Shown: in pieces, positions 45,046 through 48,795 of the stretch
Layout: every line of letters begins with the position of its first letter
Position numbering within the stretch: the stretch's first letter is position 1
Assembly: GCA_023515725.1 (NCBI GenBank)
Contig: JALDTO010000235.1
Location: 62,001 to 126,000, forward strand
Length of the DNA stretch: 64,000 bases
Direction of reading: 5' to 3'
From: Amoeboaphelidium protococcarum X5
Taxonomy: Eukaryota > Fungi > Aphelidiomycota
The notes under the pieces: generated by a model
What the model saw: only the letters and a program-made list of their open reading frames with translations
Database searches by the model: none
Told to the model about the DNA's origin: nothing
Made by a program: the position numbers and the translations under genes

Positions 45046-46833
45046 TCAAATAAAATCTTTGCTTTAAGATCTTCCAGTCATGAACCAAACATCATCGACG
45101 CGCCATTTAACACCAGAGTGATCATAATAATGACCCTTCTGAGCATGCGTAATGCCACCCAACGAATCATCTGGAGTCTCAAGGTAATCCACCACATCCA
45201 CAGTGTCCACTTAAGCGAGGGGCTACAACACCTTCACATTGTCTCCACTTATGAAGCCCAAATCGTAGCCATATAGTTGCAAGCATGCTTTAAGTTTTGG
45301 TAGAGACACCAATACGGACTTATTTTTAAGATTGGTAGACCTCACAGAACACAATGGCTAGGAGTCAGCTTCAATAGCCAACTTATGCAGAGCCTCAAAC
45401 CCGTTGGCGGCTTTGTATGACACTTTAGTAAATGGGCTCAATAGCCTATTACCAAATACTTCTTCAATGTCAATCTGACCATTGCCGTTCACATCCGGCA
45501 GAGCTAACATCATGTCGCCTCCGACAGCTCCGGCATGTAGTTCAGTCACATTACTAGGATCCAACCAGATACCGGTGCCATATTTAACATGGACATCCCA
45601 GTCCTAGTTCAAATCAAATACAAGGGGCGATTCGCCACACTCGAAAGGTACCGGATCTTCAGGAGCTGGTTATGGAGGAGGAGGAGAGGGAGTAGGAACT
45701 GGAGGTCTCACACGGCTGGGAGTGGGTTGAGGAGTATTAGCCGGCCGTGTACGCCTATCTGAAGGCGTACGACTTGTTGGGGCTGATGGCGATTCAACAG
45801 GAGTCTCGGGACGACGACGCGGTAGAGGTGATTCCGGTACATCAGGAGTTTAAGTAGGACGACGAGGTAGACGTGATTCCGGTTCAACAGGTGTTTAAGT
45901 AGGACGACGAGGTAGAAGTGATTCCGGTACAACAGGTTTTTAAGTAGGACGACGAGGTAGACGTGATTCCGGTACAACAGGAGTTTAAGTAGGACGACGA
46001 GAAGTACTTGTCAGAGATGAAAATTATGACTGTGGATTATCAGGGTTAGGATTACGCTGACGAGGAGGACGAGGAGGAGCTGGCTCGGGAGTAGATGGAG
46101 GTAGCTCAGGGGCCGGAGGCTAAGGTTATTGGGGATTCCAGGTGGCAGGTGTCTTGACAGCCTATGTCGTAGAAACACTAGAGGTGGATATCACAGTTGA
46201 GCGAGAAGACTCTACCGTGGTGCTAGTCAAAGCTTCTTAGGATGACCTAAACTAAGCAAGCGTAGATGAAATAGCTTGTGTCCTACTAGACGGAGTGCCT
46301 GAACCAGAGGAGGCTATTATTGACGATGGCGTTTGCTTAACGTCAGATGAATGGATACTAGACAATGTCGCAGGCTTTGCCACAGTTTCAGTTGTATCAG
46401 CTTTCGACGACTATCTAGCTACAAGAGATGAGATACTTGAAGCAATTTTAGTTTCAGTAGCTGGAATGGCAGGCGTAACATCTTAATTAGATGTTTTCGT
46501 GAATTGGCATGATGTGCACGGAGAGCTATCCACCATAATAGGAGAACAGGTAGTGCACGGCATCCCAGAAGTCACCTAATTTGACCCAGATTGATTGAAT
46601 ACCGTTGTAGGAGTTCTAGCTGTAGAGGTGCAAGAGGTAGACTAAGTTACACCAAACATTGACGATGAACTCGCAATATGATTGCCTGGGCAATGTTTAC
46701 AATTTTCAGATAACACGCCATCAGACACCTTGTCCCTCAAACGGCACTTCACAGGGGGATCTTCGTTCGGTAACGCACGCGCCAAGATCACAGCAGCGGC
46801 GGTAAGTATCGAGCTCAATTTCAGCAGTTGCAT
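45046..46833 (-). CDS. Secreted Ser/Thr/Pro-rich mucin-like protein with a C-terminal domain resembling the bacterial RTX/FrpC self-processing module, ~595 aa
   Basis: Signal peptide MQLLKLSSILTAAAVILARA; STP-rich stalk; ESPLVFDLN[Q]D...DMMLALPDVNGNGQIDIEEVFGN...NGFEAL...HAQKGHY..SG..WRVDDVWF. Confidence 0.75.
45814..46001 (-). repeat. Four-plus tandem 45-nt repeats (15 aa, PRRPT[Q]TPVVPESRL)
   Basis: Units start at 45814, 45859, 45904 and 45949, with a partial unit at 45994. Confidence 0.92.
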
Positions 46834-47432: not shown

Positions 47433-48795
47433 TCAATTGTACAATTCTAATGGAATATCAGCAGGTATTGGCTTAATCTCCGTACCCAATTCTTGCTCAA
47501 TTCTAAACAGATTGAAGCGATCATCATATGTGACCAAGTTGATTGCCAGGCCCAAGTGACCAAATCTCCCACTACGACCAATACGATGCAAATACGTCTC
47601 TGCATTCTTGGGAAAGTCAAAGTTGATGACCACATTTACAGCCTGGATGTCAATACCACGCGTGAATAGATCAGAACTGACCAGATTACGACACTTTCCA
47701 CTTCGGAAATCATGAAAGACTCTATTTCTATCAGCCTGTGGCATCCGAGCATGGATATAGAAACAGCTATAGCCCAGTTCAGTAATCTTCTTGGCAAGCA
47801 ACTCTACTCTCTACGTGGAATTACAGAATATGATTGACTAATTAATCTTCAACTTGCTAAACAGAGTATTTAGACAGTGCATCTTCTAACGTTCCTCCAG
47901 GAAGGCATAAAATTGCGTTATACCACGTAGGGTCAAATCTTCCATCAAGTTGATCTCATACGCATTCTGCATAAAGTTATCCTTGAAAGTCTTGACTAAA
48001 AGCGGGAAGGTGGCAGAGAATAGCAAAATCTATCTCTCCTAATGCAATAGTCCAATCAACTTCTCAATCACCGGCTGGAATTCTGGACTCAGAAGCTTAT
48101 CTGCCTCATCCATCACAAGCATCTTGCACTTATTCAATTTGGCCAATTTCCGCTCACCCAAATCCAGAATACGACCAGGAGTGGCGACAATGATGTGCAC
48201 AGTCTTGTCCAATCTGATAATGTCATCCTTCAGCCCAGTACCTCCAGTAGTTGTCATAATCTCCAAATTAAGATGCTTACCGAGAGTCTTACACACCTAC
48301 GCAGTCTATAGTGCCAGTTCTCTAGTCGGCACCAGAATAACAGCCTGAATATGATTCTACGTAACGTCCACCTTTTCCAAAACGGGAATCACAAATGCTA
48401 CATAATATAACTAGGGAATAATAAATAATAATAAGTCATCGAGGTGATAATAATGATAATCATACCTGCAGTCTTTCCTGTACCATTCTTAGCTCTGGCC
48501 AAAATGTGTAGTCCAGATAACGCGATGGGAATGGCCTCCTCTTGTATAGGTGATGGCTTCTCAAATCCAGCCTCAAATATGCCCATCAATAGTTCCCTCT
48601 TTAGAAAATAATCTTCAAAATCATTTCCCTTCGTAACAGTGACATCCTACACTATTTCATATTATAGAATATTGTGTGCATTTAAATAAAATGGATTGAA
48701 TATGCTGCATCTCTCACCTCAGTCTTGATTCTGGCATCCTTCACAGGCACAGTCAAGCCCTGCTTCCAACTATTGTCTGCACTGCCGTTACTCAT
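47433..48795 (-). CDS. DHH1: DEAD-box helicase Dhh1/DDX6 (two introns)
   Basis: [70 protein letters not shown]. Confidence 0.97.

Follow-up and report, generated by a model that had tools for sequence, protein, structure and literature searches.

A homologue of the FrpC self-processing module, with serine at the reactive position, ends a secreted stalk protein of the aphelid Amoeboaphelidium protococcarum

How does a domain familiar from bacterial toxins come to stand at the end of a mucin-like protein of an aphelid, a member of a lineage sister to Fungi, and what may it do there when the residue that carries its chemistry has been replaced? The question is raised by a gene of Amoeboaphelidium protococcarum X5, located on the minus strand of a stretch of 64,000 nucleotides (GenBank assembly GCA_023515725.1, contig JALDTO010000235.1, positions 62,001 to 126,000), which was analysed as a whole and is called the window in what follows. 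A sequence-only reading of this DNA had proposed that the gene encodes a protein made of a signal peptide, a repeat stalk and a C-terminal domain following the motif order of the Ca2+-dependent self-processing module (SPM) of RTX proteins such as Neisseria FrpC, with a divergent middle; it had pointed to horizontal acquisition, and it had warned that an E-S-P-L site makes the canonical chemistry uncertain. A literature search found no paper linking aphelids with SPM, and the members of the family whose database records were read are named only 'hypothetical protein'.

The open reading frame is invisible in a list made with the standard genetic code, as it is open only if TAA and TAG are read as glutamine. 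Its extent and strand had been given correctly: from 46833 down to 45046, the minus strand reads as 595 codons, 11 of them TAA and 9 TAG (20 in total), followed by TGA as a stop. The Rpb2 gene of the same genome also contains in-frame TAG and TAA, which are therefore sense (Gln) codons in this organism. The window protein was translated with table 6 (TAA/TAG=Gln), and database searches used its stop-free pieces, the stop-free domain of a paralogue (L020:1231-1767:-, hereafter L020) and a family alignment, A1, that includes the window pieces. The gene and its C-terminal domain are placed as follows.

45046-46833, minus strand: whole coding sequence, 595 amino acids plus the TGA stop (45046-45048), a single open reading frame under the TAA/TAG=Gln code
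45049-45630, minus strand: SPM-like C-terminal domain, residues 402-595 (194 amino acids), the last ~11 residues being a tail restricted to this clade

Sequence, profile and the fold of paralogues together confirm that this domain and the FrpC SPM are truly homologous. A hidden Markov model (HMM) of bacterial (proteobacterial) RTX-type SPMs, built from alignment A3, matches the window with 52 bits (E 3.7e-15) over positions 2-171 of its 172, and our reading frame is its sole match among the 780 six-frame code-6 open reading frames of the window. Compared profile to profile (hhalign), the family profile A1 and the RTX-type alignment A3 agree with 99.5% probability (E 1.3e-22) over 169 columns. 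Against the structures of the FrpC SPM in the PDB (6SJW and 6SJX), L020, which is 51% identical to the window domain (E 8e-46), matches over its full length with E 1.6e-8, and the A1 profile reaches 6SJW with E 1.1e-5, while the short stop-free pieces of the window protein, searched alone against the PDB, gave nothing significant (FrpC at E 1.5). Pfam and NCBIfam scans of these pieces and of L020, with a copy of Pfam that did not contain the SPM family PF26745, returned sub-threshold EF-hand, dockerin and XopAW matches only; precomputed matches to PF26745 are 'faint' for P0008, P0011 and the closest orthologue, P0004, and 'weak' for P0010, those of the bacterial P0151 and P0152 carrying no such mark (E <= 1e-5). 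At the level of the fold, an AlphaFold2 model of L020 (pLDDT 79.6) superposes on 6SJW with Z 13.3 and a root-mean-square deviation of 3.4 A over 143 residues, the next best structure having Z 3.1, and Foldseek retrieves only the two FrpC entries below 1e-3 (E 1e-6). The model of P0004:362-559 (pLDDT 93.5, pTM 0.90), which comes from another strain and is 81% identical to the window domain, behaves in the same way (Z 13.8, 3.7 A over 150 residues; Foldseek E 9e-7). The fold of the SPM was reported as new, no relative of it being present in the PDB; it consists of two perpendicular beta-sheets of eight antiparallel strands and one helix-turn-helix, with its N- and C-terminal strands paired (PMC7078468). 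The match to 6SJW is therefore specific. Profile and Foldseek comparisons with the FrpC SPM thus both found the similarity that the sequence-only reading had announced.

The features on which the comparison of residues depends are these.

45625-45633, minus strand: E401-S402-P403, aligned with the D414-P415 scissile bond of FrpC, Asp being replaced by Ser (alignments, residue statistics)
45598-45615, minus strand: equivalent of Ca site I, D407-x-N409-x-D411-W412, aligned with FrpC D419/D421/D423/G424
45460-45495, minus strand: Ca site II, a canonical 12-residue EF-hand loop, D447-E458 (FrpC D462-E474)
45283-45351, minus strand: middle segment bounded by C495 and C517, replacing FrpC Ca sites III and IV, both Cys being invariant in 26 distinct paralogues
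45082-45102, minus strand: C-terminal strand R578-F584 with D581, the equivalent of FrpC D579

The roles of residues, those of the Ca sites and of the port included, are taken from the work on FrpC, where the four Ca sites are D419-G424 plus D456, D462-E474, D499-D511 and D521-E532, and the port residues around the cleavage site are L475/G477, G491 and D579-L582 (PMC7078468). In the window domain the motifs PLVFDLNQD, GDMMLALPDVNGNGQIDIEEVFG, NGFEAL and AQKGHYYDHSGVKWRVDDVWF succeed one another, so that every motif listed beforehand is found in the order that had been stated. The site itself reads E401-S402-P403-L404, with S402 at 45628-45630, and the equivalent of Pro415 is kept, as is the first strand (P-L-V-F-D). 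Ca site I is kept as D-x-N-x-D, the loop Gly (FrpC Gly424) being Trp in the clade of the window protein; the loop of site II fits the pattern D-x-N-x-N-G-x-I-D-x-x-E, and the Pfam EF-hand models PF00036 and PF13202 score 14.0 and 13.6 bits on the window piece, below their cut-offs of 25.4 and 25.9. The port and C-terminal residues E-V-F-G, N-G-F and D-D-V-W-F are conserved across all paralogues. D579 is needed for SPM activity, which the D579A change kills, while D478N, corresponding to the Asn found here at that position, lowers the activity of FrpC only moderately (PMC7078468). What has been lost lies chiefly in the middle, where alignments and profile-profile comparison find none of the EF-type acidic loops of Ca sites III and IV, which is what had been perceived as a divergent centre of the module; the W451/W519 pair of FrpC is also lost. 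C495 and C517, which bound this segment, probably form a disulfide.

Where the domain comes from can be asked of its relatives. An exhaustive HMMER search over 1.84 billion representatives returned 301 proteins at E <= 1e-3, 92 of them at E <= 1e-30, and beyond the aphelid's own proteins most matches are 350-870 amino acids long with the domain at their extreme C-terminus. In GTDB genomes, searched with an alignment of full-length rows (A2), 65 loci were found with 39-50% identity, several per genome and on bacterial contigs, almost all in Melainabacteria (Gastranaerophilales, Vampirovibrionales, Caenarcanum). The window domain, 42-45% identical to P0009 and P0026 of this type, shares with it the C-terminal position, the loss of Ca sites III and IV, the motifs G-D-K-M-L-A-M, S-P-F-T and L-G-F-I-S, and a site that is mostly Ser-Pro; one relative of this type carries RTX nonapeptide repeats in its N-terminal part (PF00353, 26.6 bits). 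Matches in eukaryotes are few. Three come from run SRR28148137 (L048, L115, L116), neighboured by IFT122/IFT80, Rpb2 and ribosomal-protein genes; in one of these proteins a signal peptide is accompanied by four K-C-R-P-R motifs and a stalk rich in Thr. Further eukaryote-like matches lie on contigs of metagenomes, beside genes of eukaryotic type. A maximum-likelihood tree of 137 domains was rooted on RTX-type SPMs; the 16 eukaryote-like rows all fall into a single clade (SH-aLRT 98) that lies within the Melainabacteria-type family, and horizontal acquisition is therefore well supported. The phylogeny thus bears out what had been proposed and makes the donor group more precise: we read the sequences as pointing to one transfer from bacterium to eukaryote, followed by expansion, and they support Melainabacteria, not Neisseria-type RTX toxins, as donors. 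Vampirovibrionales include predators of green algae, which the aphelid attacks too, and it is plausible that a shared niche was behind the transfer.

Two observations may be added on these relatives. SRR28148137 represents a second flagellated eukaryote with the family, of ~44% GC and apparently using the standard code, with an Rpb2 64% identical to that of the present genome. Seven loci (L052, L054, L063, L064, L070, L072 and L079) from metagenome-assembled genomes titled 'uncultured Muribaculaceae' or 'uncultured Gammaproteobacteria' group among Gastranaerophilales in the tree, and the titles of these records are probably wrong.

In front of the domain, the protein has the following parts.

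46774-46833, minus strand: predicted signal peptide, residues 1-20, read from the sequence (basic n-region, hydrophobic core, A-R-A before the cut)
46735-46749, minus strand: K-C-R-L-R motif, residues 29-33, ~9 residues past the signal peptide, present in 22 of 26 distinct paralogues
46144-46671, minus strand: Ser/Thr-rich, mucin-like part of the stalk, residues ~55-230, from composition
45634-46143, minus strand: Pro/Arg-rich part of the stalk, residues ~231-400, from sequence
45795-46001, minus strand: tandem repeat with a period of 45 bp (15 amino acids), 4.6 copies, 89% matches

The signal peptide and the repeat stalk announced earlier are thus both recovered, the first by its sequence and the second as a genuine 45-bp repeat, and the paralogues all begin in the same manner, with a start of signal-peptide type. 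Ser, Thr and Pro make up 46% of the stalk, which is probably O-glycosylated. In the window protein as in the 22 paralogues that have it, K-C-R-L-R sits about 7-10 residues after the predicted cut, where it might serve in the processing of a pro-peptide or provide a Cys for anchoring; a similar motif, K-C-R-P-R, occurs four times in P0008, from a different eukaryote.

We turn to the position that precedes the Pro of the site, here called -1. In bacteria the module, in the presence of Ca2+, cuts itself at Asp-Pro, forms Asp-Lys isopeptide cross-links and attaches proteins to surfaces. Since Asp414 is Ser in the window protein, and since FrpC neither cleaves nor ligates once D414A is introduced (PMC7846742), a reaction by way of the aspartic anhydride is excluded, and the doubt first expressed about the E-S-P-L site was well placed. 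None of the 27 genomic copies of the domain has Asp-Pro at this site, a paralogue of this kind having been searched for as the sequence-only reading had proposed: the 26 distinct copies have Ser-Pro (20) or Cys-Pro (6). Ser predominates on a wider scale too. Over 192 domains the -1 residue is S in 144, D in 35, C in 9, T in 2 and A in 2, that is ~75% S-P and 18% D-P for the whole set, and 132 non-redundant domains give 102 S, 24 D, 2 C, 2 T and 2 A, with the proviso that the search profile has S or C at -1, so that frequencies among weak matches are biased towards S-P. In the non-redundant set the entropy is 1.0 bit at -1 and 3.2-3.7 bits at -2 to -5; conservation therefore starts exactly at -1. 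Canonical RTX-type SPMs with four Ca sites are often Ser-Pro too, and at least 12 switches between D and other residues can be counted on the tree within the Melainabacteria-type family. As judged from the sequences, Ser-Pro is a widespread and constrained state, not an oddity of the aphelid. Both states also meet in a single metagenomic RTX-type protein, P0123 (1281 amino acids), which has two complete SPMs, Asp-Pro in the first (residues ~334-505) and Ser-Pro in the second (~1024-1195).

We can now attempt to understand how such a protein might have been assembled and used. An ancestor of the aphelid would have taken the domain horizontally from Melainabacteria-type bacteria, in which the same variant forms the extreme C-terminus of repeat proteins, some with RTX repeats; fused to eukaryotic secretion and stalk sequences, it would have come to be written in the TAA/TAG=Gln code and multiplied to 27 copies. 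The retention of the N- and C-terminal strands, of Ca sites I and II and of the port residues argues for Ca2+-dependent folding, which would take place in the secretory pathway or outside the cell, and the pairing of these two strands, as in FrpC, would place E401-S402-P403 at the port. With Ser, or Cys in some paralogues, in the place of the nucleophilic Asp, canonical clip-and-link through an aspartic anhydride cannot occur; the module would rather stay on the stalk as a Ca2+-locked distal head for surface attachment, its conserved Ser having a structural or metal-related role at the port, and a role as an adhesin or in the attachment of cysts is suggested. The secure part of this reading is a horizontally acquired SPM-fold domain on a secreted stalk protein, with the canonical chemistry excluded. 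As a whole, namely a secreted aphelid stalk protein with an SPM-fold head acquired from Melainabacteria-type bacteria, locked by Ca2+ and used in attachment, we hold it to be likely.

Several points weigh against it. The precomputed Pfam SPM matches on eukaryotic members are only faint or weak, and the evidence of fold comes from models of paralogues 51% and 81% identical to the window domain. Support is only 83-88% at the nodes by which the eukaryote clade is placed among bacteria, in a tree obtained by a quick search with an outgroup on a long branch. Surface location, glycosylation, disulfide and adhesion are all features that we infer. Finally, -1 is nearly confined to S, D, C or T, which argues against a purely passive Ser and favours an explanation in which the module is still processed.

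This last explanation is the rival that survives best. Folding driven by Ca2+ would strain the site, and Ser402, or Cys in other paralogues, would be the nucleophile of another chemistry: either an acyl shift, N-to-O or N-to-S, at the peptide bond that precedes it, yielding an ester or a thioester, or hydrolysis by water of a twisted Ser-Pro amide, with release of the C-terminal domain and possible transfer of the stalk to a nucleophile of the wall or the host. S, C and T are indeed the nucleophiles of known acyl-shift autoprocessing, in inteins, Hedgehog and SEA domains, and the narrow choice at -1, with its sharp fall in entropy, the repeated switches between D and other residues, and the retention of Pro at +1, of the D579 equivalent and of the port residues all fit with a site that still reacts. 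However, the strained bond of FrpC follows residue 414 and does not precede it, while an attack of Ser on its own carbonyl would require a four-membered ring; Ser, Asp and Thr also replace one another in structural roles such as capping and metal ligation, and the D414A change simply inactivates FrpC (PMC7846742). We therefore see self-processing by another chemistry as unlikely, though deserving to be kept in mind. Going one step further, Ser-Pro and Cys-Pro SPMs might make up a second class of self-processing modules triggered by Ca2+, with a chemistry not yet described, acting through an ester or thioester, with which the aphelid would release the head and graft the glycosylated stalk covalently onto its own cyst wall or that of its algal host. 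This is a speculative proposal, which we think rather improbable; if it were true, the same Ser/Cys chemistry would extend to most Melainabacteria-type modules and to many S-P modules of RTX type.

Returning to the favoured reading, a horizontally acquired head on a secreted stalk, its account of origin faces another alternative, in which the gene would be a bacterial contaminant, or the transfer would have gone from eukaryote to bacteria, or the family would be anciently eukaryotic. The identity to Melainabacteria proteins, up to 50%, is high enough to make one think of it. Yet contamination is rejected: the gene has 20 TAA/TAG sense codons in frame and encodes a mucin-like stalk behind a eukaryotic signal peptide; two strains, assembled independently, both have the family, and the orthologue of the other strain is flanked by eukaryotic genes; and the gene of the window itself adjoins an ordinary eukaryotic neighbour.

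47433-47801, minus strand: neighbouring piece of open reading frame, C-terminal helicase domain of a DEAD-box-type RNA helicase (PF00271, 94.6 bits)

In addition, the bacterial diversity of the family is far larger, its outgroup consists of bacterial RTX-type SPMs, and the eukaryote-like members found among 1.84 billion representatives form one small clade. These alternatives, taken together, appear very improbable.

Whether the domain still matters to the organism is answered by the family at large. The genome (23.6 Mb in 346 contigs, ~40% GC) has 27 copies of the domain, clustered on few contigs and sharing one architecture, in which a Ser/Thr/Pro stalk links the signal peptide to the C-terminal domain. 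Over many paralogue pairs the ratio of non-synonymous to synonymous substitutions (dN/dS) of the domain is 0.04-0.2, and the domain is therefore functional, under strong purifying selection; that of the stalk is 0.48-0.56 against the closest paralogues and 0.33-0.56 over all family pairs, and the stalk therefore evolves fast. It might be argued that the loss of the catalytic Asp, of Ca sites III and IV and of the W451/W519 pair marks a decaying relic of a transferred gene, devoid of present function. This is contradicted by the selection analysis and rejected, as the domain is constrained while the stalk beside it changes; moreover, the 27 copies are intact, each ending in a proper TGA, and the same losses are common to about 100 bacterial clusters, so that we give hardly any credit to decay. 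Still less can be said for a convergent or chance likeness, with EF-hand-like loops on an unrelated scaffold, for although the only local Pfam matches are to sub-threshold EF-hand models and the window pieces alone are not significant against the PDB, the profile and HMM matches span the full length, N- and C-terminal strands outside the EF-hands included, and Z reaches 13.3-13.8, the next being 3.1, for a fold otherwise without PDB relatives (PMC7078468).

Some features of the assembly and of its annotation were noticed as well. The window gene, on contig C233, has a second copy on C207 (596197-596745) with a 100% identical domain and ~3 amino acid differences in the stalk (dN 0.003); C207 is an allelic or homeologous duplicate contig. 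On contig C155, two five-gene clusters of the family, at ~115-162 kb and ~843-897 kb (loci L013-L022 and L028-L036), have roughly mirrored order and spacing, with gene pairs that are 89% identical to near-identical, which suggests that a large segment was duplicated in inverted orientation or that haplotypes were joined during assembly. Two contigs of this genome are matched by the assembly of the other strain with 95% and 85% DNA identity. Public model P0001 (KAI3637404.1, Amoeboaphelidium protococcarum), which seems from its sequence to be the protein of locus L018, starts at an internal Met and misses the signal peptide that the genomic reading frame encodes just upstream.

It is worth setting the protein beside the systems that it resembles. 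With the FrpC SPM the window domain shares full-length sequence homology and the fold, FrpC being the only PDB match; the start P-L-x-x-D-x-N/D-x-D, the EF-hand loop D-x-N-G-N-G-x-I-D, and the port residues F-G and N-G-F/Y; the C-terminal strand Q-x-G...D-x-x-x with the D579 equivalent; and, presumably, Ca2+-dependent folding outside the cytosol. It differs by Ser, or Cys in paralogues, for Asp414, by an identity of ~20-23%, by a segment with two Cys instead of Ca sites III and IV, by the absence of the W451/W519 pair, by its place at the extreme C-terminus, whereas that of FrpC is internal, and by its eukaryotic host. FrpC has RTX repeats and type I secretion, while the aphelid protein combines a mucin-like stalk with a signal peptide of Sec type: RTX repeats were looked for in the window protein and none were found, and its N-terminal signal peptide is unlike what is seen in type I secreted RTX exoproteins. 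The unnamed SPM-like family of Melainabacteria (Gastranaerophilales, Vampirovibrionales, Caenarcaniphilales) is closer, with its 39-50% identity, its loss of Ca sites III and IV, its domain ending 0-20 residues from the end of the protein, its predominance of Ser-Pro and its several copies per genome. The bacterial proteins, in contrast, have N-terminal parts with Gly/Asn-rich repeats (RTX nonapeptides in one), lack a signal peptide, a Ser/Thr/Pro stalk, K-C-R-L-R and the aphelid Cys pair, and are written in the standard code.

Two further comparisons are analogies only. In the von Willebrand D domains of gel-forming mucins and FCGBP, GDPH autocleavage at Asp-Pro produces a reactive anhydride that can cross-link (PMC8267560), which makes them secreted mucin-type proteins with a self-cleaving Asp-Pro; their fold and sequence are unrelated, their trigger is low pH instead of Ca2+, and the window protein has no Asp-Pro. 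Inteins, the Hedgehog C-terminal domain and the SEA domain, with a strained bond beside Ser or Cys and a self-removing C-terminal domain, may illustrate the rival mechanism, again with no relation of sequence or fold to the window domain.

What emerges is a well-supported eukaryotic family of SPMs, with 27 copies under selection, and a clear case of transfer from bacterium to eukaryote: the bacterial module has become part of a secreted stalk protein of eukaryotic make, and has come to be encoded in a variant genetic code. Its commonest natural form, both in the aphelid and in bacteria, has a tightly conserved Ser, not Asp, at the reactive position. How Ser-Pro SPMs behave matters to our understanding of attachment and to protein ligation with SPM-based tools such as NeissLock.

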